64,000 nt of DNA from Oikopleura dioica (GCA_907165135.1 OU015568.1:8618001-8682000), one strand, 5' to 3'. Numbered from the stretch's first letter, positions 4,111 through 51,632 are shown. The notes: a model not told the origin generated them from the letters alone. A program made the numbers and translations.

Positions 4111-7107
4111 CTAGCAGCTTCCGATTCCGACCAGGCGGTTGTCGCAGCATTGGCTCTTGTTAGCGTCGAAGGGGTGACGTTTTGGATAGCTTCCACAGCA
4201 TTGTTCCGGCTTTTTCGAGGGTCGAGGAAAAATAGAAAAATAGTCAAGGTGAAGCGACTGTCAGAAAAGGCGATAAGGAGAATAAATTCGTTCCCAAACC
4301 CTTCAAAATTGAACTAAATTCGAACTACTGTTCTTTTTGACTTGATTTTCCAGCTTAACTTTTGTAAGATAAAACGAAACGTGGAATAAATGACTGGTAC
4401 TGACTAATTATTATTGATAAGGGGCACGAGCCGATTTCCGGAAGCATAATTCAGAACCTCCGGTGAACAGTCTGACGTGCTGAGAGGCGTAAAATCCCGA
4501 TTCGAAATAACAAATCGCACACGTCTTTATACCGCCGTATTATATTGTTTTAGCCGGCTTAGGGTAACTTTCCAGGTAGTGATTTCCTGGAACTGGAGTC
4601 CTTTGGACCCTTTCCTGTTTGTCCTTGGTTCCATTAAACTTCCATTTTTCCTGAAGAGGCGCGCTGGGCTGCCCACCACCTGAACACATTTGCTCACGAT
4701 TAAAACCAAACCTTTCGTGGAGCTGTTGCTTCCATTGCAAAGATTCTTGAACGATTCCGCGGGCCATTTCTCGGTCGCACTCGCAAAGATTTCGCCGACA
4801 CGAGTTTTGGTTGCTATCTGAAATGCTTGAGGTAAACGACCGTTGTTCCAATGGTAAGCGAATGGTTTTGGCACAAAGACGCTGCCGTGGCATTTGAAAT
4901 TCTTGTGTTTTGATCAATCAACGTGGACGATACCGTGAAGATACCATAATCGACACAGTAAGTCTATTCGAAGCTTGAACTTACCGCAAACGATATTTCT
5001 TTCGCCCGTGATATCATCAATTTCGGCTTTGAAAGAATAGCTGAAAATGGGTCCTATGTTGGTCTTTCTCGACCTTAAAAATTTTCATTAATCGGATTGA
5101 CCCGTTGGACCCAATCTTGTATCCTTGTAGTCGCATCCTTCCATCTCCAAGCATTTGTAGCACTGTCGCAAGTGAAAGCAAGTTCTAAAAAAGCGCATTA
5201 GATGAGCTCATAATTGTACCCATATGGACTAATTTTCATTCACATTCATTCGAGTTTTGCTTCAATTACCACTAATGAGCCTTTTCGGCCTCTTTTTTTA
5301 CCGTTGCCGAAAGTTTTTTTTTTATTTAAAGCTTTATTTTTCTGAAAATTTTTTAACCCTTAAACTCCTTGTTAAAATTTATCATCAAAAATAGTCCCAA
5401 AAACTGCACGTCTCAATCCAACCCCAAGTCAAAAATGAATTTGTAAGAAACGAAAAAGGAGGAGCTACCTCTCGTGGCCATTTCGTCAAATTTGCCTCTC
5501 GTGGCAAGTTGCCTCTCGTGGCCATTTGCCTCTCGTGGTCATCACGTATCGGCTTATTTGACGTAAGGCATTCAGATGATAAGTTGGGTGTGAAAGATTC
5601 TTTCAAAAATACTTCGAGAAGCATGGGTATTACTGGGATATTATTTCTTGAGACAAGCCAAAAGAAATTATTAATAAATATGAACGAATTGATCAAAAGT
5701 CATACTCTTTTCCAGTTTTTTTCTGACAGAAAATAATAAAATTATTCAAAAAAATATTCTATCTTGATATTTCTTTATAGAATACTCGAGAATAACCTGA
5801 CTTCTAAAAAATATGAGGTGCGTGAAATCTCCTCTTCGAGAACAATTTGGATACCCTAAGGTTCGTTAGAAGATACGTGATGACCACGAGAGGCAAATGG
5901 CCACGAGAGGCAACTTGCCACGAGAGGCAAATTTGACGAAATGACCACGAGAGGTAGTTCCCCACGAAAAAGCTGGTCTCGATAAACCTCACCGTGGTTG
6001 ATGAGTCCTTCTGATTTCGGAAAAGGAATGGGAAAGTTTAGCGCGCAGCGCGGTCCAGCGCTTGATCGGACGTTTAGACGCGCGCTGGAAACTTATAACA
6101 AAGCGAGAATTTTCCTGGAGCTGTAAAATTGTAAAATTTTCGAACGGAGTAAATGTGAACATTTACTAGAACTTTCGGGCCGGCTCATCCTTTCGGAACC
6201 ATCTACCAAGGGAACTAGGGGTTTAAAAACTGGATTCTTACCTATCAATTGGGTCAAGTGCGGGTCCTTTTCCAACCATAATGTCCGTCGATCCGTCCGG
6301 AAAGCACCAGCAACCATATCCGCAAAATCTAAAAGAGAAAACCGTGAGGATCCTTTTTCACGAACAGGATTATGCATTTCTCAAACCACAGGGTGGAATA
6401 CTTCCGAACCCGTAATTCGCAATTAGCCCCCAACTGATCAACTCACTTGTCATATTGTCCCATCGCCTTCGCTCCAAGCATAAAGTTGATCAGCTGCTTC
6501 ATCTGAACAAACTTGCGCACTTGGATTTTTTGCTCGCTTGGGCGCGGATTCGGGTATCGAGAAAAGCCTCGGACGGACTGAAAGAACGAGTTTAGTTTTT
6601 CAGAGAAAGCAATAAAGGGGACTTACTCGTTTGTCTTCCAGTTGAGCCTGGATATGGTCCGGGAACTCGGTTATGTTCACGTACCAATCCAGCTTTTGAG
6701 CAGTATCTAAAACCGGTTAGCGATGTCTTTTCATTCACGAAGTTTCTAGTCAACATTTTGAACACCACAATAAAAAAACGAATTCCCCAAATAAATATTC
6801 AATTATTCGCGTGGGTCGTGATTAAATCAATACAAATAAAAGGATAAAGTTCATATACATAACTGGAATACAAGATTGCGTTTAATGTTCCTGAAATAAC
6901 AATTATAAAAATAACTCAATTAATGTCTATTTCAGATAAAAACCACCATCATTCACCATCAATATAATATCTCGGTACTACAGTATAATTTGCACTGCAA
7001 CTAGAAAAAAGCCTTTTTTTCTGCTTACCATAGAAAACAGTCTCTGCTTTTATCATCAAAATCAGCAAAAACAACAAAAGTTTCTTCAACAGCATCATTT
7101 TTCCCAT
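4111..7107 (-). CDS. Secreted phospholipase A2-like protein with substituted catalytic dyad and a Cys-rich C-terminal module; multi-exon
   Basis: Signal peptide MGKMMLLKKLLLFLLILMIKA. Later exons encode RKFVQMKQLINFML, FCGYGCWCFP...GKGPALDPIDR|TCFHLRQCYKC, SCRRNLCECDREMARGI, and a last exon CCGSYPKRHPFDANKSQCCDNRLVGIGSC*. Some internal junctions are unresolved. Confidence 0.75.
5459..5963. mobile_element. Mutator/foldback-like MITE (~505 bp) inside a PLA2-like intron
   Basis: ~90-bp inverted arms built from 4 copies of CCTCTCGTGG (5459-5548 versus 5873-5963). Exact 9-bp direct repeat ACGAAAAAG at 5450-5458 and 5964-5972. Confidence 0.8.
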
Positions 7108-26798: not shown

Positions 26799-29700
26799 TT
26801 ATTTGTTTTTGCTATATTTTTTGATCTCCTCGCCGATCTTGTTGTCCACGCCCTTGATTTTTTGAATCAGCTCTTTTTGATCGCTGGTGGATTGAATGAG
26901 ATCGAAGACTTCTCTGAGCAGTTCGCGTTTCGCAGTTGCTACTTTTTTCTTCCCTGCTCGGGCCATCGTGTCTTTCAGGTCCTGAACAATTAGTTAGTTG
27001 TGTAACTGATAGGAATGGCCTCTTACCAAGGTGTAAGCCTTTCGCCACGCATCCTCCTTCTCCTTGAATTCATCAAGATTCCAGGAGTCGATATCCTTGT
27101 GGCATAGGCCGGGCTTGTCCCTCCAGCTTGACGGGAAGAAATTCTTCACCGTTTGATGGAGCTTTTTCATGTACTCCTTCTCTCTCTTCTCTACTCTCTC
27201 TCGTGCAGCCTTTTCTTTTTCAACAGTGCGCTCGAGTTCTAGCAAACGCTCCTCGAAGTTTTCCTCCGATTCTTTGCGATGCCGGCGCTTTGGCTACAGA
27301 AAAAGGGTCAGTAAAACCTTTTTGGAATCAAGGCAGACTCACCGGTGGGCTCTTTCCTCCATAATCGCTGTTGTCTTCTTCCGAGCTGTCACCAATCACT
27401 GCTCTGTGTCGATCAAAGCCAGAAGTCACCTCTGCTCCTACTGGCCCATGTCCAGAGCGTCTCTTTCTCAAGTTTCTCTTTCTGACAATAGGCTCGTCGT
27501 CCTCAGAATCCGAAATAATTCGACCTCGGTTCTGAATCGGTGCGTCGCGAATCACTGGCGGTGCTTTTCCACTCGCACTTGTCGTAGCGCCGTTGCCGTT
27601 TTCGCTTGTCTTGGCAGATGGCCGTTGGATTTTTCGACGCTCGGGAGAAACGGCGACTTCTTCGACATCGCGCGATTCCTTTTTGATTACGGGCAACATC
27701 TCGAGCGATTTCGTTGTGATGACTTCTTCGGCGTTTTTGCAGCTGTTGTATTTCTGAACGAAATAATAAATAAACATAAATATCTTTGGTTAAGAAAATT
27801 CTCTTTACAAAGTAATAAGAAAGTCGCTAGAAATTAGCACTTGGCTCGCACACACAAAGTGGGATTTACTTCTGGGTGACAAGAATGGCTTGACCAACGC
27901 TTGACTGAGAGTACTTACAGGATCGGTCAAATCCATGCAGATGAAATAGGCAGGATTCGCATCGTCTGGATTATTGACTTTTCGGAACTTGCCGCAGTCA
28001 TCTCTCGTGCACCGGAAAAATGGAGGTTGAGCCTTTAAAAATGTTGAAAAGAGTAGGTCGAGAAGTGCTTTTTACCTTCTCAACCGCCCGGTTTGTCGCC
28101 TGGGTTTCCTGTCTCTCGCACAATGGATCGCTGGTGGGGTAGCCGAACTGGCACCACTGCTCGAACTCGATTTTGATTCGCTTGTGGTAATCGTGCGCGC
28201 GATCTTGGCACAACTTCACAAGAGTCCTGAATTCAAAATTGATCATTCCATAAAACAACCAATAAAGTAATAAACATACAATCAAACGTACCTAAACTCT
28301 CTATCATCCGCGAATCGCTGCTTGCTCATGCTCGGCTGCATCAACGCTGCTGGAACATCCACCGCCGCCAAAACACCAAGAGGCCATTTCGCCATTTCCG
28401 GTCCTTCGACTTCAACGATGAGGCGATTTTTAGAGAAGATTCGGATCCCGGATTTTTGTCGCTCGCGGATGTTGTAGCCGAGGGTGAGGGTGAAATCGGT
28501 GACATTGGAGATTTTTTCCTTTTGCTTGATTTCCAGGTCGAAGCGGCGAATGTCACTCTCGTACTTGTCGACTGTCATGTTGAGCTTGCGAATTTGCTGG
28601 AGAGAGCTAGCGTTGGTGGACCCTTCTTTCGTCAAAGTGGCGATCTGAAAATGAGTTAATCAAGATTATAGATCCGTGGGTAAGTTTAGAAGATTAATCA
28701 GATTTCGTTTAGTTTCCGGCGAACTATCTTTAAAAAAGCCCAAGTTTCGTACGAAGGAAAAAAGTTTACTGTGCTTACCTCAGATTTGACTTTCTTGATC
28801 TTGTTCAATTTCTTCTTTTTCTGCTCTGTCAAGTCTGCGATTTTAGACTTAGCCGTCGATCGGAATTTGCCCTTTGGAAGATTGTATTTGCGTCTTTCGT
28901 ACATCAGATCGTAGATTCGAGTTGGGCGGATAAATTCGCCGCGGAGGAAGACTTGCATCTTAGGCTTAAGAATATGATGAAAAAGACGAAAAAAGCGTGA
29001 ATTCACCTTGAGGTAGAGGGTTGAGAGGTATTCTTTGAGAGATTTCGCCGCGTTTCCATGATCTCCAACATCGTGAATGTCGTTGTCGTCCAGCTCAGCG
29101 TTCAATTCTGGCTCGCCACTTTCATTCAGGTTGAGCTGGTAAAGAATGATGATGGTTCCTTGGCTTTCCAGGCCATAAAATTGCTCTAGAATGGAATTTT
29201 ATTTGAAGAATCTTCAAAGAAAGGACTAAAACTAGGTTTCTTACCAAGAAGAGTTTCCTCGTTGGAGAAGGGCGAGTAGCTCGTGATAAGATCGACTTCT
29301 GTCTCGTGTCGCATCTTTTCGTCTTTTTCTGGCTTTGATGGATCGTAAATGGGGCGATAGTTGACCGACCCGTCGCTTTCGTAGACCATCTTCCAGCTCG
29401 GCAGAGGGCAGATTACTTCGTTCTGAAAAAAAAGGAGACATTCTAGCACTGGAAGAGGAGATAACTCTTACATTTTCATTCTCATATCCAGCATGAGAGG
29501 ATTTAATGAATGTTTGAGAGATCATGAGTGCGGAGAGCTCGTCATCTTTGATCGACAAGACGAGGCAGTCGTTTCCAACTCTCATCGAGCCAGATTTTAA
29601 CCCGTTGCCGTACATGCCGATCATTTCTGGGTTGTCGTTCTTGCTCGAGTAGCCATAAGCGATGACGTTGAACATTTCTTTCGACGTCATTCCGCAGCTA

Positions 29701-30005: not shown

Positions 30006-31274
30006 CGCCCGAAAGAATTCCTCTTCGCTGTCTGAAAATCAAAATGATATGAATTTGATTTCAAGGTACAAATCAGGTAGTTACTTCTAATGAAAATCTC
30101 TCTTTTCTTCAATGTTTTTCTATTTTAGTTTTAAAAAGGAAGTTCTCTGTAGCCGATACAGTAGGTTCATTTCCTACGCCTTTTTCTCTAACAGACAGAA
30201 TACTAAAAAAGGGAAATTTGTAAAATTGGCGCGCACAGTTTTTTGCGCCGAATTGGCCAAGGCGCTGGGACAGAAGCCAATCAGCGCTGCGCTATTTTTT
30301 CCTTTAGGGACGGAAAATCGCGCTCTCGCGCTGCAGCTGATCATCGCGAAATCGGGACTCTAAGAGTAGATTGCCGGAATTGACAACTCAAACAAGCGGA
30401 TAGGCCGATTTCTGACAAGTACCAATCGACCCAATCTGATTGTTTTTTCTATCAGATGTTAACCCTTTTTATGATAATTAAAAAAAAAAGTTAGTCGTTA
30501 CCTTAAAAATCTAGCTTTTTAAAAAATACGAGCTCTCGAATCTCTTACGGTGATCGACTGAAGAAAGTCGTGAAAATATCGGACAGCTGAAATAAAATCT
30601 AGAAAGTTTCAATGACCTCTTCGATCGCGATTCTGGAATGAGCATTTTTTACCTTTTGAATCTTTCTTGTTCTGGTTGACCTGTTCGTCCATCTCCAGCA
30701 GCGTCAAAATATCAATCGGTTCATCATGTCTTACTGTACGAATCAAGTCCAAAATGGGAATATCATCCGAATCTGAAGCATTTCCGCCAGCGCGGCCATC
30801 ATCAGTTTCCTCCTCATCACTTGTAAAAGCTACAGTGATCTTTAGGTTCCGACATGGGTCTTCATCCCTCTTTTGAATCGTCGAGTTCGACACCTCTACT
30901 TGTTCCTTGGATCCCAGGGATTCCAAATCTGGAAAAAAAGTAGGGGTTGGTCACGTGTTTTGGCTCGAAATCGGCGATTTTTCATTTTGGGCCGGAGGAT
31001 TTTCACAAGTTTGTTAAACAATCCTCTGCCTCAGGCAAAACGGAGGTAACCAATGAAAAGAGCGCCCTTTTTTACCCTAGAATCCACCTTCAAACCTTCC
31101 GGCCTCGCTCTCATATCCCTAGAATGAACAAAAGTTTGGAACTTTCTTGTTTGTCGGAAAACACTGAGCGGAGGACTTTCGCTGGTGGAAGACCTCCTGG
31201 AAGACCAATATTAAAATAAATGAATAAATGACCTTCCTCGGTCAGTAAATGGCCACTTGAGGTCAACTTCGGTC

Positions 31275-31720
31275 ACTTTGTGCCGGAGGACCTTCCGGAG
31301 GACCCCTCTGATGGAAGACAAGCTGGTGGAAGACCAAGATTTAAAAACAAAAAAGAAATAAAATAAAGAGCTATGATTGGCTTGTTATTGCCGCTTATGG
31401 CCAATTTCGGCCGTTTTCTGCCGGAGGACCTCCCGGAGGACCTCCTTACTGGAAGACCAACTGCTGGAAGACCAATATAAAAAAAATAAATAAATAGCCT
31501 TGCTTGGTCACATATTGCCACATTTGGCCAACTTCGGCCGCTTTCTGCCGGAGAACCTCCCGGAGGACTCACTTACTGGAAGACAAACTGCTGGAAGACC
31601 AATATAAAAAAAATAAATAAATAGCCTTGCTTGGTCACATATTGCCACATTTGGCCAACTTCCGCCGCTTTCCGCCGGAGGACCTCCCGGAGGACTCACT
31701 AACTGGAAGACCAACTGCTT
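31275..31720. repeat. ~130-bp sub-repeat (4 copies) in the left foldback arm; mirrored at about 34400-34835
   Basis: Recurrent CCGGAGGACCT(C/T)CCGGAGGAC...GGAAGAC...CTG(C/G)TGGAAGACCAA...AAATAAATA...TTGGCCAA blocks. Confidence 0.8.
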
Positions 31721-31771
31721 GTAAACTTGTTGGGAATGAATCTGTCTGGGATAAAGACACGCAAGCACATA

Positions 31772-32400
31772 CAATTCAGTCAGGCAGGGGGCCAAGCCGA
31801 CCCGTAGGGGAGGCCACGCCTGTTTATTGAATTCAGTCAGGGACAGGGCGAAGCCGACCCGAAGGGGAGGCCACGCCTGTTTATTCAATTCAGTCAAGGA
31901 CAGGGCGAAGCCGACCCGAAGGGGAGGCCACGCCAGTTTATTCAATTCAGTCAAGGACAGGGCGAAGCCGACCCGAAGGGGAGGCCACGCCTGTTTATTC
32001 AATCCAGTCAGGGACAGGGCGAAGCCGACCCGAAGGGGAGGCCATGCCTGTTTATTCAATCCAGTCAGGGACAGGGCGAAGCCGACCCGAAGGGGAGGCC
32101 ACGCCAGTTGATTCAATTCAGTCAGGGACAGGGCGAAGCCGACCCGAAGGGGAGGCCATGTCTGTTTATTCAATCCAGTCAGGGACAGGGCGAAGCCGAC
32201 CCGAAGGGGAGGCAACGCCTGTTTATTCAATTCAGTCAGGGACAGGGCAAAGCCGACCCGAAGGGGAGGCCATGCCTGTTAATTCAATTCAGTCAGGGAC
32301 AGGGCGAAGCCGACCCGAAGGGGAGGCCATGCTTTTCATTCAATTCAGTCAGGGACAGGGCGAAGCCGACCCGAAGGGAGGCCACGCCGAGTTATTCGAT
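31772..32400 (+). repeat. 57-bp minisatellite, about 11 copies (left arm)
   Basis: Unit AATTCAGTCAGGGACAGGGCGAAGCCGACCCGAAGGGGAGGCCACGCCTGTTTATTC. Confidence 0.95.
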
Positions 32401-33056
32401 TCAATCAGAGAGAGAATGTAGCTGACCCAAAAGAGAGGCCACGCCCGTTTGTAAAATTAAGTCAGTTATTCTCTCTCGTGCTCGATGCTAGTGTTATTAG
32501 CTTCGCTAACTCTCTCCTTTTTCTGACTACAATAAATGCTAAGCTTATAACCCTAAACTTAATCTTAGATTAAACTCAACTACATTGCACCGCGGTTTAA
32601 AATCATTGACGAGGCTGAGAAATTATTCTTTATGTCGATTTTATTGCAGGATTGTAGAATCTGGACGTACAGGGCAGTATTTAAAATCTGAGAATATTAA
32701 AATTGATTTAAGCCCGAGTTTCTTGCTTCGAAGAGTTAAGCGCAGACCGGGCGGGCGCTCTCGCGAGTCGAGCGAATCTCGGGCCTGGGGCCTATTTCCG
32801 ATCGTCGACGAATCACGGCGCATTTGCGAGTTACTAACACTATCATCGAGAAAAAAGTAATAGAAAGAATTAATTTATCTAGACACTATGGTCAAGCTAT
32901 CTTCGTCCAAGAAATCGTGTTCATTTATACTTAATCGCATATTGTGAGAGCAAGGTTGGAATTTCTATAAATTAACTAGGGACCTTAGACGCATATGAAT
33001 TAAATTATTTTAAATGTGTCCGGGGAGAGCGAATATAGCAAAATCCGCCTGGATCT

Positions 33057-34340
33057 TCGGGTCGGCTTCGCCCTGTCCCTGACTGAATTGAATAAACAGG
33101 CGTGGCCTCCCCTTCGGGTCGGCTTCGCCCTGTCCTTGACTGAATTGAATAAACTGGCGTGGCCTCCCCTTCGGGTCGGCTTCGCCCTGTCCCTGACTGA
33201 ATTGAATAAACAGGCGTGGCCTCCCCTTCGGGTCGGCTTCGCCCTGTCCCTGACTGATTTGAATAAACAGGCGTTGCCTCCCCTTCGAGTCGGCTTCGCC
33301 CTGTCCCTGACTGAATTGAATAAACAGGCGTTGCCTCCCCTTCGGGTCGGCTTCGCCCTGTCCCTGACTGAATTGAATAAACAGGCGTGGCCTCCCCTTC
33401 GGGTCGGCTTCGCCCTGTCCTTGACTGAATTGAATAAACTGGCGTGGCCTCCCCTTCGGGTCGGCTTCGCCCTGTCCCTGACTGAATTGAATAAACAGGC
33501 GTGGCCTCCCCTTCGGGTCGGCTTCGCCCTGTCCCTGACTGATTTGAATAAACAGGCGTTGCCTCCCCTTCGAGTCGGCTTCGCCCTGTCCCTGACTGAA
33601 TTGAATAAACAGGCGTTGCCTCCCCTTCGGGTCGGCTTCGCCCTGTCCCTGACTGAATTGAATAAACAGGCATGGCCTCCCCTTCGGGTCGGCTTCGCCC
33701 TGTCCCTGACTGGATTGAATTAACGAGCGTGGCCTCCCCTTCGGGTCGGCTTCGCCCTGTCCCTGACTGAATTGAATAAACAGGCGTTGCCTCCCCTTCG
33801 GGTCGGCTTCGCCCTGTCCCTGACTGAATTGAATTAAAAGCGTGGCCTCCCCTTCGGGTCGGCTTCGCCCTGTCCCTGACTGAATTGAATAAACAGGCAT
33901 GGCCTCCCCTTCGGGTCGGCTTCGCCCTGTCCCTGACTGGATTGAATTAACGAGCGTGGCCTCCCCTTCGGGTCGGCTTCGCCCTGTCCCTGACTGAATT
34001 GAATAAACAGGCGTTGCCTCCCCTTCGGGTCGGCTTCGCCCTGTCCCTGACTGAATTGAATTAAAGCGTGGCCTCCCCTTCGGGTCGGCTTCGCCCTGTC
34101 CCTGACTGAATTGAATAAACAGGCATGGCCTCCCCTTCGGGTCGGCTTCGCCCTGTCCCTGACTGAATTGAATCAACGAGCGTGGCCTCCCCTTCGGGTC
34201 GGCTTCGCCCTGTCCCTGACTGAATTGAATAAACAGGCGTGGCCTCCCCTTCGGGTCGGCTTCGCCCTGTCCCTGACTGAATTCAATAAACAGGCGTGGC
34301 CTCCCCTACGGGTCGGCTTGGCCCCCTGCCTGACTGAATT
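33057..34340 (-). repeat. 57-bp minisatellite, about 22-23 copies (right arm, inverted)
   Basis: Reverse complement of the same unit. Diagnostic variants recur at 285-bp spacing (33136/33421 and 33256/33541). Confidence 0.95.
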
Positions 34341-35592
34341 GTATGTGCTTGCGTGTCTTTATCCCAGACAGATTCATTCCCAACAAGTTTACAAGCAGTT
34401 GGTCTTCCAGTTAGTGAGTCCTCCGGGAGGTCCTCCGGCGGAAAGCGGCGGAAGTTGGCCAAATGTGGCAATATGTGACCAAGCAAGGCTATTTATTTAT
34501 TTTTTTTATATTGGTCTTCCAGCAGTTTGTCTTCCAGTAAGTGAGTCCTCCGGGAGGTTCTCCGGCAGAAAGCGGCCGAAGTTGGCCAAATGTGGCAATA
34601 TGTGACCAAGCAAGGCTATTTATTTATTTTTTTTATATTGGTCTTCCAGCAGTTGGTCTTCCAGTAAGGAGGTCCTCCGGGAGGTCCTCCGGCAGAAAAC
34701 GGCCGAAATTGGCCATAAGCGGCAATAACAAGCCAATCATAGCTCTTTATTTTATTTCTTTTTTGTTTTTAAATCTTGGTCTTCCACCAGCTTGTCTTCC
34801 ATCAGAGGGGTCCTCCGGAAGGTCCTCCGGCACAAAGTGACCGAAGTTGACCTCAAGTGGCCATTTACTGACCGAGGAAGGTCATTTATTCATTTATTTT
34901 AATATTGGTCTTCCAGGAGGTCTTCCACCAGCGAAAGTCCTCCGCTCAGTGTTTTCCGACAAACAAGAAAGTTCCAAACTTTTGTTCATTCTAGGGATAT
35001 GAGAGCGAGGCCGGAAGGTTTGAAGGTGGATTCTAGGGTAAAAAAAGGGCGCTCTTTTCATTGGTTACCTCCGTTTTGCCTGAGGCAGAGGATTGTTTAA
35101 CAAACTTGTGAAAATCCTCCGGCCCAAAATGAAAAATCGCCGATTTCGAGCCAAAACACGTGACCAACCCCTACTTTTTTTCCAGATTTGGAATCCCTGG
35201 GATCCAAGGAACAAGTAGAGGTGTCGAACTCGACGATTCAAAAGAGGGATGAAGACCCATGTCGGAACCTAGTGATCTTCTTCCCGTTTCGAAGCTTAGA
35301 TGAGCGATAAAAAGACATTTTCAAGAGTCTATTTGTTCGAAAAATGAACTGGTAAAAAGTGAGGAAATCAGGCGCTTTATAAAGAAAGGAAGACTATTCT
35401 GGATTTATCAAAGGGTTGAGATCCGGTTTGAACTTGGTGCACCATTCTTTCATGAGTTATCGAGATATTCTTGATTGATTTGAGTGAAGTATGAACTTTA
35501 TCATTAAAATTTTTTCTGGAAAATCATAACAGTGAAAAGATAAGCTTCCAAATTCAAGCTTCGGATTTCTCGTCCACCATCGATTTCTCCAT

Positions 35593-42818: not shown

Positions 42819-45800
42819 ATGAGCCCTTCGCCCAGCGGCGAATCCAGCCGGAACTTCTTGTCGAACGATCAGAGCAAAACTCGGCGCCCTTCGAAAGCTT
42901 CTCAGGAAAAGGGATGGAATGAAAAGACGATTATCGATGGCCTCCTCCTCGGTTTATGACCTTTTACGGGTGTTTGAGGGTTAAATAGAAATGTTGAGAG
43001 GCGGTTGATTGATGATAATTAGCGCGAGATTTATTACCAGCGAGGAGAGTTATTTGTCAAGTTTTTTTTTCGAAGGAAAAATGTAACCCATCATTAGCAG
43101 GAAAAATGGCCTTGCAAATATTCTCACTGCTTATTTTCTGTTTACAGTAGGGCTCGCCAAAAAAAAGTCGATGTCGATTCTCCCTTACGAATTTTATCTT
43201 AAAATGATCCCCGTTCTTTTCTGATTCAAATGATGTGCTTATGTCACTCGTAAGTCTTGGGGAAAAAATTCTAGAGCTAGGCCGAAATTCCAGTTTTTGG
43301 ACTTCAATAACGTGCTATGACGTCATCTTTTCGGAAATTTCAATATTTTTTTCAATTTTTTAGCGTAACTTTTTATGCTCTTTTAAATAAGCTACCTTAG
43401 GTACTTTCAAGGGGAGAATCAGGATTTTGACTAAAAATCTTCGCTCAAAATCCTTGAAATTCACCATTTTTTGGCCTCGTTTCAACCTAGAAAACCTTAA
43501 ATATCTCGAGTTCCCCAATTTGCCCCCGCGCGGCAAAGGGCGCAAATAAAGCGCAATGATCTGTTCTATAGGTGATTAATCTCAGATCTACGGAGAATCC
43601 AAGTTAACCATGAAAAAAATTCGAATAACTGATAAAAAAATATCTGAAATTTCGATTTTTCTTCAGAAAAGACCAATTTTTTTTCAGAAGATGTTGTCAT
43701 CAGACCCTCAACGAACCCTTAAATTGAAGCTCAGAATCTAAGCTACAAGTAGAAGTCAATTAAAAGCGCTCTTTTAAGATTTCGTTTGATTATTTTTATA
43801 GAAAACCAATCAGTACCCGAAAAATAGCCATTTTTATCGAAAATTCGCTCTAAAAATTTTTCGCCTGACTTTAAGGGTATGGTTTTATGGGGAGTTTTGG
43901 GTTTTAGAACATGGAGAACAAGAAAAACATAACTGCTGACAGTTTTAAGTTTTCTTGGCGAGCCCTAGTTTACAGTACAAGTTCTACTGCAAACAAACTC
44001 AAGCATTACGTAAGCCAGATTTTTTTTCGCGAAATTTGCTCAAAAATCGAGCTGAGCTGAGCTAGATTTTTTGAGCTGGCTCAGCAAGGTCTGTCAGCCC
44101 AAAATTGAACAAGTTACAACTACAAAAGTAAGTGGCTGGCTGTCAAAATCCATTAGATTTTATGATCAAGCAGATGTGATTTGTTTCCGAATAGCTCGCA
44201 AACATTTTAGATGGATAAGAATTTGATTTGGTAGGAAAATCTTATCGCCAATTATTGATTGATTTTTAGATGAAATTCTTTACCTTTTGGTATTAAATTT
44301 CTTCTAATAAAACCCCGATAACTGGCGATAGAAATGCCTTATCAAATCTGAAGCTTCGAGATTATTCGTATTAAATTTTAAATATTTGCAAATTGCAAGC
44401 TACTCGAAAAATTCCTCCGGCTTGGCTGCTGAGAATAAAAGCTCAGGGGTTTCTCATGTTTGCCTGTAGCCGGGTTTATTTACTGTAGAAAGATAGCTGA
44501 TTCAGGGAGATTATCCTACACTAGTAACGCGCACTTGAGCACCTGAAACTGCGCATTTTTTGTTTACCAAGCTTGTGCTTTTGTTTCTCGAGGAGCTAGA
44601 ATAAAAAATGGTAATTCTAGCTCTAGCGGTAAAATAGAAAATCACTCAACGAAGGTAATAATATTTTTAGAGGCACGCGCGGCAAACGCATAAAAACGGT
44701 ATTTCAAATGGACGTAAATTTAAATGTCATTCAATTTTCTCGCTACTGGAACAAAATTTTCTCATGAAAAATCAAGCAATAGCTCCAGTAAAAGAAGGAC
44801 ACAAGAAACTTGAATTCGCGGGGAATGAGCTTATCGATCTCCTTATCAAATTATATTTCCCGCTGCGCGTAGAATTACCAAACACGATAACGCAGACCTA
44901 GGGTATCTGTTATCATCCCTTCCCACAGACGTATGCAACCAGAATTTGACAAATGTTATCCGGCAACTTTCCTGCCTCGCCGGCCATGCGGAAGAAATCC
45001 TCGGCGAGCATGCTGGCGAACTTTGGGTTCGAAACGAACGAATTCGCAAAATATCCGTTCGCGTAGATGCACTCACGGAGAAAATTAAAAGTCTAAATCC
45101 GAAAACATCAGGTAAGCAATCTTGAAATCATAGAAGAGTACCAAAACCGGATCAATATTTATCCGAATCTTAGATTAGCGGCTGCTAGTTTGATTTCATT
45201 AATCTTGAGATAATATTGAATAATATTCTAGCGGCGGAATAAATCTATTTTAAAACCAACCCGATTCTTATGTTATTTTTAGCGCAACTTCAAAACACGC
45301 CGCGGCGGGTCGTCTCCACTCCTCCTTTCAGGTCGCCCTCTCATGTAGAACGCCGTCTCTTCGCCATCAAAAGCCGTCCACAAAGGTCTGTCTCTTGCTA
45401 TAAATTCTTGATAGCGATGATTATCTTCAGTGTAGTCAGACTGCAGAGACAGCGTTTATTTTAAATGTCACAAAAAACGGCCGAGCTGGGGGATCGATTT
45501 TCTCGCGAAATAATCATCCCAGGGAACTCCCAAAGGGTGGAAATTGTAGCTAAGGGTCTAATCTGTGGCATGGTGGGGTTTAAAAATTCTAGAGATGAGT
45601 CATTATTGCGTAATTGACCTCTAAAGTTGAACTTCTCTAAAAATCGCCATTTTCCCTTTTCTAAAGGGCCGTTTCCCTTTTCTGAAAGAGAAGAACATCT
45701 TTCTAGACTCTCTCTCTCTTTTTTCCAGAATAAGGCCACCATTCAGGCCCCTTCGATAATTTCACGAAACTTAACTAAAAAAAAATAAAATAAAAACCAT

Positions 45801-48800
45801 AAAAAAACCAAAAATAGGGACAAAGTAAATTTTTAAATCAGATGGAGGTGGGCGGGGTTGGGGACGCAACTGAGAATGATCAACTCAGGCTCCTCCCGGC
45901 CTTTGTCAAGCCCCTTAAATTTGAAAATCAAGGGACGGGGCTGAAACGGCCCGAAGGGCCGTCAAGCCCCTTAAATTTGAAAATCAAGGGACGGGGCTGA
46001 AACGGCCCGAAGGGCCGTCAAGCCCCTTAAATTTGAAAATCAAGGGACGGGGCTGAAACGGCCCGAAGGGCCGTCAAGCCCTTAAATTTGAAAATCAAGG
46101 GACGGGGCTGAAACGGCCCGAAGGGCCGTCAAGCCCCTTAAATTTGAAAATCAAGGGACGGGGCTGAAACGGCCCGAAGGGCCGTCAAGCCCTTAAATTT
46201 GAAAATCAAGGGACGGGGCTGAAACGGCCCGAAGGGCCGTCAAGCCCTTAAATTTGAAAATCAAGGGACGGGGCTGAAACGGCCCGAAGGGCCGTCAAGC
46301 CCCTTAAATTTGAAAATCAAGGGACGGGGCTGAAACGGCCCGAAGGGCCGTCAAGCCCCTTAAATTTGAAAATCAAGGGACGGGGCTGAAACGGCCCGAA
46401 GGGCCGTCAAGCCCCTTAAATTTGAAAATCAAGGGACGGGGCTGAAACGGCCCGAAGGGCCGTCAAGCCCTTAAATTTGAAAATCAAGGGACGGGGCTGA
46501 AACGGCCCGAAGGGCCGTCAAGCCCCTTAAATTTGAAAATCAAGGGACGGGGCTGAAACGGCCCGAAGGGCCGTCAAGCCCCTTAAATTTGAAAATCAAG
46601 GGACGGGGCTGAAACGGCCCGAAGGGCCGTCAAGCCCCTTAAATTTGAAAATCAAGGGACGGGGCTGAAACGGCCCGAAGGGCCGTCAAGCCCCTTAAAT
46701 TTGAAAATCAAGGGACGGGGCTGAAACGGCCCGAAGGGCCGTCAAGCCCTTAAATTTGAAAATCAAGGGACGGGGCTGAAACGGCCCGAAGGGCCGTCAA
46801 GCCCCTTAAATTTGAAAATCAAGGGACGGGGCTGAAACGGCCCGAAGGGCCGTCAAGCCCCTTAAATTTGAAAATCAAGGGACGGGGCTGAAACGGCCCG
46901 AAGGGCCGTCAAGCCCCTTAAATTTGAAAATCAAGGGACGGGGCTGAAACGGCCCGAAGGGCCGTCAAGCCCCTTAAATTTGAAAATCAAGGGACGGGGC
47001 TGAAACGGCCCGAAGGGCCGTCAAGCCCTTAAATTTGAAAATCAAGGGACGGGGCTGAAACGGCCCGAAGGGCCGTCAAGCCCCTTAAATTTGAAAATCA
47101 AGGGACGGGGCTGAAACGGCCCGAAGGGCCGTCAAGCCCCTTAAATTTGAAAATCAAGGGACGGGGCTGAAACGGCCCGAAGGGCCGTCAAGCCCCTTAA
47201 ATTTGAAAATCAAGGGACGGGGCTGAAACGGCCCGAAGGGCCGTCAAGCCCCTTAAATTTGAAAATCAAGGGACGGGGCTGAAACGGCCCGAAGGGCCGT
47301 CAAGCCCCTTAAATTTGAAAATCAAGGGACGGGGCTGAAACGGCCCGAAGGGCCGTCAAGCCCCTTAAATTTGAAAATCAAGGGACGGGGCTGAAACGGC
47401 CCGAAGGGCCGTCAAGCCCTTAAATTTGAAAATCAAGGGACGGGGCTGAAACGGCCCGAAGGGCCGTCAAGCCCCTTAAATTTGAAAATCAAGGGACGGG
47501 GCTGAAACGGCCCGAAGGGCCGTCAAGCCCCTTAAATTTGAAAATCAAGGGACGGGGCTGAAACGGCCCGAAGGGCCGTCAAGCCCCTTAAATTTGAAAA
47601 TCAAGGGACGGGGCTGAAACGGCCCGAAGGGCCGTCAAGCCCCTTTAATTTGAAAATCAAGGGACGGGGCTGAAACGGCCCGAAGGGCCGTCAAGCCCCT
47701 TAAATTTGAAAATCAAGGGACGGGGCTGAAACGGCCCGAAGGGCCGTCAAGCCCCTTAAATTTGAAAATCAAGGGACGGGGCTGAAACGGCCCGAAGGGC
47801 CGTCAAGCCCCTTAAATTTGAAAATCAAGGGACGGGGCTGAAACGGCCCGAAGGGCCGTCAAGCCCCTTAAATTTGAAAATCAAGGGACGGGGCTGAAAC
47901 GGCCCGAAGGGCCGTCAAGCCCTTAAATTTGAAAATCAAGGGACGGGGCTGAAACGGCCCGAAGGGCCGTCAAGCCCCTTAAATTTGAAAATCAAGGGAC
48001 GGGGCTGAAACGGCCCGAAGGGCCGTCAAGCCCCTTAAATTTGAAAATCAAGGGACGGGGCTGAAACGGCCCGAAGGGCCGTCAAGCCCCTTAAATTTGA
48101 AAATCAAGGGACGGGGCTGAAACGGCCCGAAGGGCCGTCAAGCCCCTTAAATTTGAAAATCAAGGGACGGGGCTGAAACGGCCCGAAGGGCCGTCAAGCC
48201 CCTTAAATTTGAAAATCAAGGGACGGGGCTGAAACGGCCCGAAGGGCCGTCAAGCCCCTTAAATTTGAAAATCAAGGGACGGGGCTGAAACGGCCCGAAG
48301 GGCCGTCAAGCCCCTTAAATTTGAAAATCAAGGGACGGGGCTGAAACGGCCCGAAGGGCCGTCAAGCCCCTTAAATTTGAAAATCAAGGGACGGGGCTGA
48401 AACGGCCCGAAGGGCCGTCAAGCCCCTTAAATTTGAAAATCAAGGGACGGGGCTGAAACGGCCCGAAGGGCCGTCAAGCCCCTTAAATTTGAAAATCAAG
48501 GGACGGGGCTGAAACGGCCCGAAGGGCCGTCAAGCCCCTTAAATTTGAAAATCAAGGGACGGGGCTGAAACGGCCCGAAGGGCCGTCAAGCCCCTTAAAT
48601 TTGAAAATCAAGGGACGGGGCTGAAACGGCCCGAAGGGCCGTCAAGCCCCTTAAATTTGAAAATCAAGGGACGGGGCTGAAACGGCCCGAAACATTAATT
48701 TTTATCAAAAAAGAGTCGAAAAACCATTGAAAATGGTGTATCAGATGTAAAGTTTTGATATTTTGGGGTCAATCGAGGTCATGTGACCTCAGATGACCTT

Positions 48801-51632
48801 TTATGTTCGTTTATTTTAATCAGCATCAAAAAACAATCAAAATGATGTATGGGACATTATAGTTCCTTGCAGAAAGAAATGAAAGGTCATTTGAGGTCAG
48901 GTGACCTCAACTGACCTCAGACGAAAAAAAGGAAGAAAAATGACGTCGATTGATGGTAAAATCGACGTTTCTATCAATATTATATGTAATTACTCTATAT
49001 CAGGATGAATTACGTAATATTACGTAATTATGACTTATCACTAGAACTTATAAACCCCCCTAAGCCACAGATTAGACCCTAAGCTACAATTTGCGCCCTT
49101 GGGGGACTCTCCATGATGGATATTCTCGGAGAAAATGGATCCCCCAACTTCTGTGACATTTAAAATAAACGCTGTCAGAGCAAGTTGAACATCAACGAGG
49201 ATCCGTTACTTCAGCCATTTGAAGTGAGAAATGGACGATCTGGATCGATGATCAGGCCTAGGTCGCTTGAAAGCGATATTCTTCTCTTATCACTGCCACG
49301 GTACGTATTCTTGAAATCGTGGATCATTTGCGAAAGCTGGTCAATACGCCCAAAGCCCTTTTTCCACCATTTGACTACTGTTTCAGACAAAATTCCGCAC
49401 AATCCAATTCTCCACTGACGCAAATGATAATCAACCCACCAAGTACTCGTCCATCCGAGTCGCTCCCCTCTCCAATCTTCGGCAATCATCAACAAGTCGA
49501 TCCTACCGACCCGCAAAGAACAATCAGAAGAACAAACACGACCGCCACATGTGGCGCCGCTCAATTACCACCGAGCAAAGGCCGTCTCCTCCTTGATTCC
49601 GACGCTTCGACATCCCCGGAGCGGTCCAAGACCACCCATTCTGTTTCTGACATTCATGGCTTCGGTGACACGCGGCTTGCGCTGGTCCGGCGGTCGATGA
49701 TCGCACGGCGCACCCAGCAGCGACTCAGAGAGAAGCGCAGACGAAATCGAACGGTCGCACTTTCGCCTGAAGATGATCGAAGATCCAGCTTTATATCTAC
49801 TTTTCTCGATCAGAAATCGTTAGAAGACAGGTCCACACAAATCCCAAGCCAGCCGTCAACCCTTTCGAAAGAAGCAGAAGAAGCCACCAAGCAGCCTGAA
49901 AAACTGGGCGATCTAAACTCGACACTGACGGCCACTTCTCCAACGCAAATTAAAGAACCGCTAAATATGAACAGCTTGGTGCTACAGGCAGAAAACAATG
50001 AAAGCTCTTCCGGTTATTGGACGGGAGGCAGCACGATTCAAACTCTTCCTGATCGCTGTGTGCAAGAACTGAACGATCATAACCTCATGAAGCACAACTC
50101 TCGCTTCAATAATCACTCCTCCATCAGCGACCATCGCACCTTCTCTCCCCTGCTACAATCAGCAAAATCAGAATTCAGCACGACGGATTCCGAGCCGCTC
50201 CTCTTCGCGCGTCCCAAACCACCACCACCCTCACGCTCAGATTCAATCCCAAACTCGCACTCTGACTCGCAACCGCAAAGTCCCTCGCCCGAGCCGCTCT
50301 TGATTGAAAGGCCCTCGACACTCGTTGGTCTATCGGACAGCTACTTGAGCGCTGTCAATAGCTGCGAAATGTCTGTACTGACGCCGTCTGACGCTTCAGA
50401 ATCAGGCATTTCCTCAAATTTGGAGCAGTTCGCTTTTCCATCTCCTCCAAAGGTAACAAATATTATCACCCAAAAAATGCTATTTCTATTTCTAGAACAT
50501 CCCAAAATCGCCAACTAAAAATCCCCTCCCACCATCGTCTTGCAATCCAATGCAAGATGAACTAGCTGCGCGACTTTTCCACCGCCGCTCAAAGATCGAA
50601 CGAATTGAAAACGGCGAAGAAGAGGCATTTGAAAAGCCTGCTAGAACCTTCTCTTCACCAGAGCCAGAAAAGGTTTCTCTTTCGCCAGTTTCAAGCCCTA
50701 GAAAAGTCTCACCGAAGAAGATTCTTTTCGGAGCCCCCTCAAGCCCGGCGAAAAGTGACAGCACGCTAGAAGAAGACTCGATAGGAAAAGGTCGAAAGTA
50801 CACTGATAAGATTTTCTTGCTAAGCAACCAAAAAAAAAGCTCTTTTCTTTCAACCTTTCGAAAGAAATCACTGTCATCGAGAATCCCAACCGGGCTTTAT
50901 CAGATACTTCTGAAACCGAGCCGCTGCCAAAACCGGAAGACGATGAAGTCTTCGAACGAACCTCTTCCCCTGCTTCACTTTCCCCAATCCGTTCTTCGTC
51001 AGTTTCGCCTGGAAGAAGACCAGCTGGACTTGGCTTAGGCTTGAGAGCCACTCAAAGCTTATCTTCTAGAGGCCGCTCGGATTCAAGACGCGCGAAGAAT
51101 CTCTTGACAAAGGTTCATATCTTGCCAAAGAAGCGGCCAATAAAAATGATTTTAGAATAACACAGCGAATTTCAAATCCCTTCTTCTCCAAAACATCTCA
51201 GGAGGATCAAAGAAAGATCGAATATCCGCCGCAGAAAGACTCAAAGTTCAACCTGGCCAAACTCTTCAGGATCTTTACAAGCCAAAATCAGACTCAGCAT
51301 CAAGTCCGAATCGGTCAAAATCGGAGTCATTAACAACTGATCAAAGGTATCATCAAGCCTTTTTTCTCAACGATTACAGTAATTTTAGCCCGAAAAGACG
51401 GAACAAATCGAAAAACCGCTTCAACTCGGCCCACCGCCTGACCTCTATCGTTGAAGAAAAAGACCTCCAAGCGGCGAAAGAATTCTATCAAAACAACTAC
51501 TGTAATACAAACGGAGACAACTGTAACGATTCTACCGCTACTGCAAAAACGGAAAACTGTACTACCACTAATGACAACTGTACGAGCTCAGAACAACCCG
51601 CCGCCGATCAAAAGAATCAGACAGCAGTTTGA
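42819..51632 (+). CDS. NHS/NHSL-family (WAVE-homology domain) actin regulator; exon 3-4 region interrupted by a TIR element
   Basis: PFAQRRIQPELL...FS|DVCNQNLTNVIRQLSCLAGHAEEILGE...VDALTEKIKSLNPK is WHD-like. The long Ser/Pro-rich exon has LREKRRRNRTVA, SSGYWTGGST and PPPPSRSDSI. Ends QTAV* at 51632. Confidence 0.72.
43148..43967. mobile_element. 820-bp hAT-type MITE in the NHS-like first intron
   Basis: TIR TAGGGCTCGCCAA...TTGGCGAGCCCTA. Exact 8-bp TSD GTTTACAG (43140-43147 and 43968-43975). Confidence 0.87.
45449..49175. mobile_element. 3.7-kb non-autonomous TIR element carrying a 56-bp satellite
   Basis: The outer 24 bp form a perfect inverted repeat (ACAGCGTTTATTTTAAATGTCACA). Imperfect inverted similarity continues for about 160 bp (45449-45612 versus 49019-49175). 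Flanking direct repeat CAGAG (45444-45448 and 49176-49180); an AGA repeat is possible if the ends are 1 bp further out. Confidence 0.8.
45905..48691 (+). repeat. 56-bp satellite, about 50 nearly identical copies
   Basis: Unit AAGCCCCTTAAATTTGAAAATCAAGGGACGGGGCTGAAACGGCCCGAAGGGCCGTC. A few 55-bp copies have CCC instead of CCCC, and one has an A>T change near 47646. Confidence 0.97.

Follow-up and report, generated by a model that had tools for sequence, protein, structure and literature searches.

The stretch of DNA considered here (the window, 64,000 nucleotides long, contig 1:8618001-8682000 of the Oikopleura dioica genome) carries at positions 30843-35271 a 4,429-bp foldback element that lies within a coding exon of the minus strand. 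The 5' end of the element at 30843 reads TAGGTTCCGACATG, and the identical 14 bases, inverted, close it at 35271. Directly outside both ends stands an exact direct target-site duplication (TSD) of 8 bp, GTGATCTT, which matches at 8 of 8 bases, the left copy (30835-30842) having been read directly and being identical to the right one (35272-35279). Most of the sequence between them is given over to two inverted arms of 1,623 and 2,217 bp, and a short spacer makes up the remainder. The open reading frames (ORFs) of the element contain no credible Pfam domain, all the long ones being translated repeats. The initial annotation of this DNA, which had described a 4.4-kb foldback with an exact 8-bp TSD and no transposase, is accordingly borne out on each of these points, its coordinates being exact. 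Overall, the element is a non-autonomous class II cut-and-paste transposon with a foldback architecture.

Both arms are built from the same modules. The left one begins with a unique terminus of 371 bp (30843-31213, plus strand), which opens with TAGGTTCCGACATG and is 99.5% identical to that of a sister copy and ~79% identical to that of a relative on contig 4, both described below. It is followed by four subterminal tandem repeats of ~127 bp (31214-31732, plus strand), each holding up to four copies of the 8-mer GGARGACC, then by a 39-bp junction and by 12.2 units of a 57-bp minisatellite (31772-32465, plus strand), the outer 276 bp of which mirror the right array at 99%. Beyond the unique central spacer (32466-33054), which is without a credible ORF and measures 589 bp where ~650 bp had been estimated, the right arm runs in the opposite sense on the minus strand, with 22.6 units of the 57-bp repeat in inverse orientation to those on the left (33055-34341), a 39-bp junction, four ~127-bp subterminal repeats (34381-34899) and a unique terminus of 372 bp (34900-35271) that closes with the inverted TAGGTTCCGACATG. 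The order first proposed for the arms, a unique terminus, four repeats of ~130 bp and a 57-bp array, thus holds, with the repeat length refined to ~127 bp. No match to Rfam in the element reaches the gathering score, the folding of single repeat units shows nothing notable (z between -1.6 and -2.1), and there are no inner termini in the element.

The inverted pairing of the arms joins 30837-31073 with 35041-35277 and 31065-32047 with 34066-35048, each pair being 99% complementary, and the parts of the arms outside the arrays (929 vs 930 bp) differ only by a single base in a run of T. The arrays differ in length, and the inner part of the right one, next to the spacer, consists of a 285-bp block of five units whose copies are 100% identical. 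Since this block repeats without a single difference, the asymmetry of the arrays is best understood as recent local amplification. The 8-mer GGARGACC is likewise concentrated in the arms, which hold 24 of its 28 matches in the window, 12 per arm and all facing inward, where 2.9 would be expected by chance in the whole window. In Muta1 of Aedes aegypti, subterminal repeats have been shown to increase transposase binding and excision (PMC5499845), and by this analogy the GGARGACC arrays of the 127-bp repeats tentatively suggest candidate extra binding sites for a transposase. The relative on contig 4, which has GGARGACC on one side only, weakens that idea.

The position of the insertion is a feature absent from the initial annotation. 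The element splits the exon at codon 14-16. On the minus strand, the right flank encodes the ATG and the first 13 codons (35280-35318; MSFYRSSKLRNGK), followed by the duplicated AAGATCAC, and the left flank resumes with ITVAFTSDEEE..., the remaining open frame (VAFTSDEEE...) occupying 30609-30834 on the same strand, to the left of the left TSD copy. When the element and one TSD copy are removed in silico, a 90-codon open frame runs from the ATG. Two ENA proteins from short contigs, P0002 and P0003, were retrieved by a word search with the left part; they are uninterrupted at this place and read MSFYRSS[K/E]LRNGKKITVAFTSDEE..., that is, MSFYRSS[K/E]LRNGKK-ITVAFTSDEE, which is the reading obtained when both window flanks are joined with a single TSD copy. 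Over 76 residues, P0002 aligns gap-free to the window with 86% identity. Because both proteins read unbroken across the junction, including the N-terminus encoded in the right flank, conservation shows the exon with its start codon to be real, and an empty site with one copy of the 8-mer is, from these database entries, present in related genomes. A further ENA protein, P0001, from a 539-bp contig, matches the interrupted exon at 99% identity, its sequence beginning with MKITVAF exactly at the junction; it counts for neither an occupied allele, an empty allele nor a footprint.

The interrupted exon lies upstream of exons on the same strand (28282-29690) that match HATPase_c_3 and Morc6_S5, the Morc6_S5 match being below the curated Pfam cut-off. 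The exon and these MORC-type ATPase exons may share one transcript. The left flank is single-copy in the assembly and has no allelic contig. The O. dioica assembly, OKI2018_I69, derives from a single male sequenced with Nanopore reads, was polished and has been merged into one haplotype, and its longest scaffold is treated as an autosome (PMC8008620); contig 1, with 17.1 Mb, is that scaffold. A broken allele can persist under these circumstances, since the sequenced male is diploid at contig 1 and could carry it in single dose. Most likely, the insertion represents a broken allele of the host gene. With its exact TSD, an empty site in relatives and a sister copy 99% identical, the window copy constitutes a clean, datable insertion and probably a natural knock-out of a gene that adjoins the MORC-type ATPase exons.

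How widely the element is distributed was assessed in the whole genome (64.28 Mb, 19 contigs). A search with the terminal 228 bp, of the kind proposed at the outset (there with the terminal 100 bp) for locating copies that encode a transposase, leads to three further genomic places and thus to the known copies only, none of them autonomous. The first is the sister copy at contig 1:9173172 (span contig 1:9172774-9176130), 0.5 Mb from the window element, in which the terminus, the 127-bp repeats, 13.6 array units, the spacer and 6.4 inverted units are all present, the junctions being the same and the identity 99.2-99.3%. The second is the relative at contig 4:14265852-14269126, 3.27 kb long and ~77-79% identical, which has perfect terminal inverted repeats of 330 bp and an 8-bp TSD of its own, GGTTAACC. 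It does not have the foldback form: the 127/129-bp repeats and the 57-bp repeat, in 3.6 units, are confined to one side, and its other half consists of unrelated 43-bp repeats. The third, at contig 1:16149026, is a 62-bp remnant of one end.

The family is therefore very small, comprising the window copy, a truncated sister, a diverged non-foldback relative and a 62-bp remnant, given that the spacer occurs in the genome only in the two young copies (99% identity) and that the 330-bp inverted repeat of the contig-4 relative, used as a genome query, finds nothing beyond the known copies. [quoted passage not shown] Within this narrow circle the family includes both an asymmetric form with long inverted repeats and a foldback form, and the 57-bp repeat is old within the family, its expansion being later. 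Further, the sister copy, the relative with its own TSD and the empty site in two related public sequences establish the element as a mobile unit and not an artefact of assembly. The element itself belongs to an ordinary and well-documented kind of mobile DNA. The family is undescribed, and no paper covering both Oikopleura and foldback elements was found in the literature searched; a survey of chordate mobile elements does describe, for Oikopleura, DNA transposons that expanded in a very recent burst (PMC4350176).

That the insertion is recent, as had been suggested from the exact TSD and the near-identical arms, can now be said on further grounds: the element is young because its sister copy is 99.2% identical and because relatives have the empty site. 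The identity of the arms calls for a separate explanation. Compared with both window arms, the sister copy shows the same six substitutions and one indel; had the arms mutated independently from a foldback ancestor, all six changes would have to fall on the sister branch, with a probability of ~1 in 64. We infer that the arms may have been kept identical, or recently made so, by copying one onto the other. The contig-4 relative likewise has perfect inverted repeats, of 330 bp. Arm identity could be inflated if reads of both arms were mixed during polishing.

The sister copy also provides a view of what becomes of such an element after insertion. It sits in an ABCG-type transporter gene, and its left flank corresponds to ABC_tran profile positions 4-80 of 137 and to ABCG structures as far as about residue 200. 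Beyond that point, the ABCG paralog P0004 still has the ABC signature, Walker B and H-loop motifs. At the sister locus the element ends inside the inner array and is followed directly by an ORF preceding ABC2_membrane exons. The right arm of the sister, together with at least ~100 codons of the ABCG gene (the second half of the ATP-binding domain, with signature, Walker B and H-loop), is thus lost, and the loss is one deletion with its breakpoint in the minisatellite. The pair CGGATCAT / CCGATCAT at this copy had been considered as a TSD matching at 7 of 8 bases and was rejected, as the right flank derives from further downstream in the ABCG gene and the ATP-binding domain lacks its second half. 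With its long inverted arms and arrays the element is deletion-prone, as is shown by a sister copy that has lost one arm plus the adjoining part of a gene. The link to rearrangements drawn in the initial annotation from the architecture gains in this way one example, a deletion adjoining the sister copy. The genome of O. dioica is among the smallest and most rearranged in animals, and its young DNA transposons are little described; the joint loss of an arm and part of a gene offers a concrete example of how such elements could feed its high rearrangement rate.

The terminus of the foldback is not confined to this family, being common to abundant MITE-like families. The 14-base terminal motif, with one mismatch allowed, led to many MITE-like ends genome-wide, and three elements ending in TAGGGTCCGRCAYG, of 235, 1,281 and 1,373 bp (L058:501-735; L056:8220-9500; L055:501-1873), each have an 8-bp TSD (3/3; GGATGAGT, CCCTGTCC, CATCCAGC). 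A 23-base terminal pattern with two mismatches, which also covers the variant TAGGGTTCCGCACGATYGGAGGA, gave 42 matches vs none for the reversed control, many of them on the 2.9-Mb contig 3; the variant itself accounts for at least 24 termini, again with many on contig 3. Inside the MITE termini, at a distance of 17 bases, stands a GGAGGA motif, which the copies read show as GGAGGAC. Some of the MITE-like copies are filled with 56-bp arrays, for example at contig 3:2212600-2215614. A second repeat-filled element with terminal inverted repeats lies in the window itself at 45449-49175; it has ends different from those of the foldback, CAGCGTTTATTTTAAATGTCAC, and 50 units of a 56-bp repeat, a unit with a relationship to the foldback's 57-bp one (the best rotation scores 13 vs a shuffled maximum of 8).

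All six elements with a TAGG-type terminus for which a TSD was read have one of exactly 8 bp, which answers the earlier proposal that TSD lengths be compared among other copies, the contig-4 relative being one of those with 8 bp. Moreover, the 62-bp remnant (L009:7019-7104) preserves a trace of how the DNA may be cut. It is arranged as TGCATAAC, 62 bp ending in the terminus, GTTATGCA and again TGCATAAC, so that the 8-nt insert at the junction of terminus and flank is the exact reverse complement of the flank. This is seen at one remnant, and an 8-mer would match in this way at a given place with a probability of ~1 in 65,000. The enzymes of the hAT, Mutator-like element (MULE) and Transib groups form hairpins on flanking DNA (PMC5499845), and the insert suggests, as far as sequence can tell, P-nucleotides left by an opened flank hairpin. 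Cutting by way of a flank hairpin is thereby suggested.

The length of the TSD in six of six elements, the TAGG terminus and the palindromic junction insert together favour a hAT-type enzyme, which is probably, with some room for doubt, the mobiliser of the element. Under this proposal, a transposase acting in trans would recognise the terminal motif TAGG(G)TNCCG(A)CAYG, make staggered target cuts of 8 bp and cut the donor, most likely through a hairpin on flanking DNA. The window copy has landed in a conserved gene, in its first coding exon, and the allele is most likely broken by it. Non-autonomous hAT elements and MITEs share with the window family the exact 8-bp TSD and short subterminal repeats, and possibly a YARNG-type end (TAGGG in the sister MITEs) and flank-hairpin footprints. 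The usual hAT terminus has the consensus YARNG, which the TAGGG of the MITE-like sister families fits at 5 of 5 positions. In contrast to the element described here, hAT elements usually have short inverted repeats (10-25 bp) and are not foldbacks. Should the mobiliser be a hAT enzyme, the foldback architecture, until now connected with the MULE and P superfamilies, would extend to a third superfamily.

Several observations weigh against a hAT-type mobiliser and have to be set beside those in its favour. The TAGGT of the foldback and of the contig-4 relative fits YARNG at only 4 of 5 positions, the fifth base being T, and the six TSDs match no known hAT target consensus. Genome queries with the 228-bp terminus, the 330-bp repeat of the relative, the spacer, the 14-mer and the 23-mer found no autonomous partner, and no match to the terminal motif (14-mer or 23-mer) lies near any hAT or MULE coding match. 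The hAT dimerisation domain has nine matches in the genome, seven of which come from one 6.1-kb family with an 8-bp TSD, GTGTTAGC. The member of this family that was inspected (L021:1493-7565; contig 5:13843992-13850064) is a true hAT element with internal ~30-bp arrays and a fragmented transposase frame, and the family was rejected as a partner, having the terminus CAGGGTGTCAAATCG, no GGARGACC and no BLAST similarity to the foldback. Long inverted repeats, subterminal tandem repeats and the foldback form are, moreover, typical of MULE and P elements and not of hAT (PMC5499845), and MULE-like open frames exist in the genome. As an observation on the rejected hAT family, its copies on contig 1 are paired ~4.87 kb apart (636914 with 641782; 732634 with 737494).

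The serious rival to a hAT-type enzyme is that the same non-autonomous foldback is mobilised by a Mutator-like (MULE/Foldback-type) transposase, which is unlikely and yet deserves full consideration. [quoted passage not shown] The genome contains eight weak matches to MULE domains, three of them in open frames of 541-596 amino acids (the loci include contig 1:5821086, contig 5:10116858 and contig 2:8822519). Muta1, a 'type 2 foldback' MULE, forms flank hairpins as well, makes TSDs of 8 or 9 bp and has long terminal inverted repeats composed of a terminal motif and subterminal tandem repeats (PMC5499845). It differs from the window element in being autonomous and in its inverted repeats of 145 bp, its subterminal repeats of 12 bp and its G-rich palindromic end, GGGTCTACCC, whereas the window element has arms of 1.6-2.2 kb, repeats of 127 and 57 bp, no transposase and a TAGG end. 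Tm1 of root-knot nematodes, a Mutator/Foldback family, resembles the O. dioica family in its composite inverted repeats of variable length, in having MITE-like and cargo-bearing members, in copies that lack the terminal motif after recombination and in a deletion at one locus that removed a gene (PMC3169594). The TSDs of Tm1 are, however, mostly 9 bp (range 8-10), and some of its copies encode a transposase (PMC3169594). It is on the TSD and the terminus that a MULE-type enzyme fares less well: MULE families usually vary in TSD length (8-10 bp), but here it is exactly 8 bp in six of six, and TAGG(G) resembles the YARNG start of hAT-type ends, unlike the G-rich ends of MULEs such as GGGTCTACCC of Muta1. 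Nor does the terminal motif occur near a MULE match.

The classical foldbacks of Drosophila deserve comparison in the same context. Non-autonomous copies of FB and of Tetris (D. virilis) consist, like the window element, almost entirely of two long inverted arms, each with a unique terminal part and internal tandem repeats whose number differs between the arms, around a short spacer, and both have been associated with rearrangements, deletions among them. The TSDs of FB are 9 bp long and its transposase is MULE-related; the window element differs from it in its 8-bp TSD, its TAGG end and the absence of sequence similarity. Tetris also seeds satellite-like arrays (PMC4079207).

A different kind of possibility concerns what the host does with the inserted copy. 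In its most far-reaching form, a hAT-type transposase (8-bp TSD, flank hairpin) would mobilise true O. dioica foldbacks, the arms would be identical by copying within the element, and folded RNA would let the spliceosome remove copies, so that these hairpins would be tolerated in coding exons of a very compact genome, making the family a source of new introns. This combination is improbable. Improbable too is the introner-like proposal that the foldback acts as a new intron, the hairpin joining its ends so that splicing removes the element and the host gene works. Formally, pairing a GT donor located 3 nt inside the upstream end with an AG acceptor that lies 25 nt short of the downstream end would retain 36 additional bases, in frame and stop-free. 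No frame-exact canonical intron exists, however, the sole exact option being AT-AG; the candidate acceptor lacks a pyrimidine tract; and ~80 in-frame pairs (a GT or non-canonical donor with AG) pass the loose filter, among which one GT-AG pair is expected by chance. The more probable reading of the exon is a broken allele.

Mobilisation by a P/Galileo-type enzyme is very unlikely, even though the initial annotation had named a P-like mobiliser beside a hAT-like one. P elements do make 8-bp TSDs. The architecture of Galileo (P superfamily, Drosophila) is similar, with long inverted arms and internal tandem repeats that hold multiple transposase-binding sites, and Galileo causes chromosomal inversions (PMC3688188, PMC4168063). 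At the same time, the 8-nt palindromic junction insert fits flank-hairpin chemistry and not the staggered cut of P elements (PMC5499845). The P-type transposase domain PF21787 has no match in the genome, a result that counts for little, given that control genomes are equally silent. Galileo itself has 7-bp TSDs, different ends and a P-type THAP transposase. The P half of the original proposal is not supported, and the insert argues against P-type cutting; its hAT half is favoured by the 8-bp TSD in all six, the TAGG end and the palindromic insert. Any mobiliser other than hAT, MULE or P takes up the remaining probability; for one such group, Merlin, the domain PF12762 has no match in the genome.

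Finally, the suspicion that no mobile unit exists here, and that the palindrome is a chimeric fold-back Nanopore read or two head-to-head insertions around host DNA, has some basis in an assembly made from polished Nanopore reads (PMC8008620), in near-perfect palindromes being a known class of artefact and in polishing that could homogenise arms, but is extremely improbable, as the unit in its entirety is bounded by an exact TSD, the palindrome has unequal arrays (12.2 vs 22.6 units) around a unique spacer, the succession of array, spacer and inverted array recurs with identical junctions at a second locus, inner termini are absent and the spacer has no copy beyond the window element and its sister, and both terminus and TSD length recur in a diverged relative and in abundant MITEs.

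Set against the known systems as a whole, the element is like FB, Tetris, Galileo, Tm1 and Muta1 in structure and shares sequence with none of them, and its TSD and terminus point to hAT over MULE or P. Elsewhere in the window there are genes for a serpin, ELYS, V-ATPase subunit a and a VPS15-like WD40 protein. Two 17-bp tandem arrays at 5492-5538 and 5880-5932, mutual reverse complements ~390 bp apart, perhaps represent the two arms of a small foldback or MITE.

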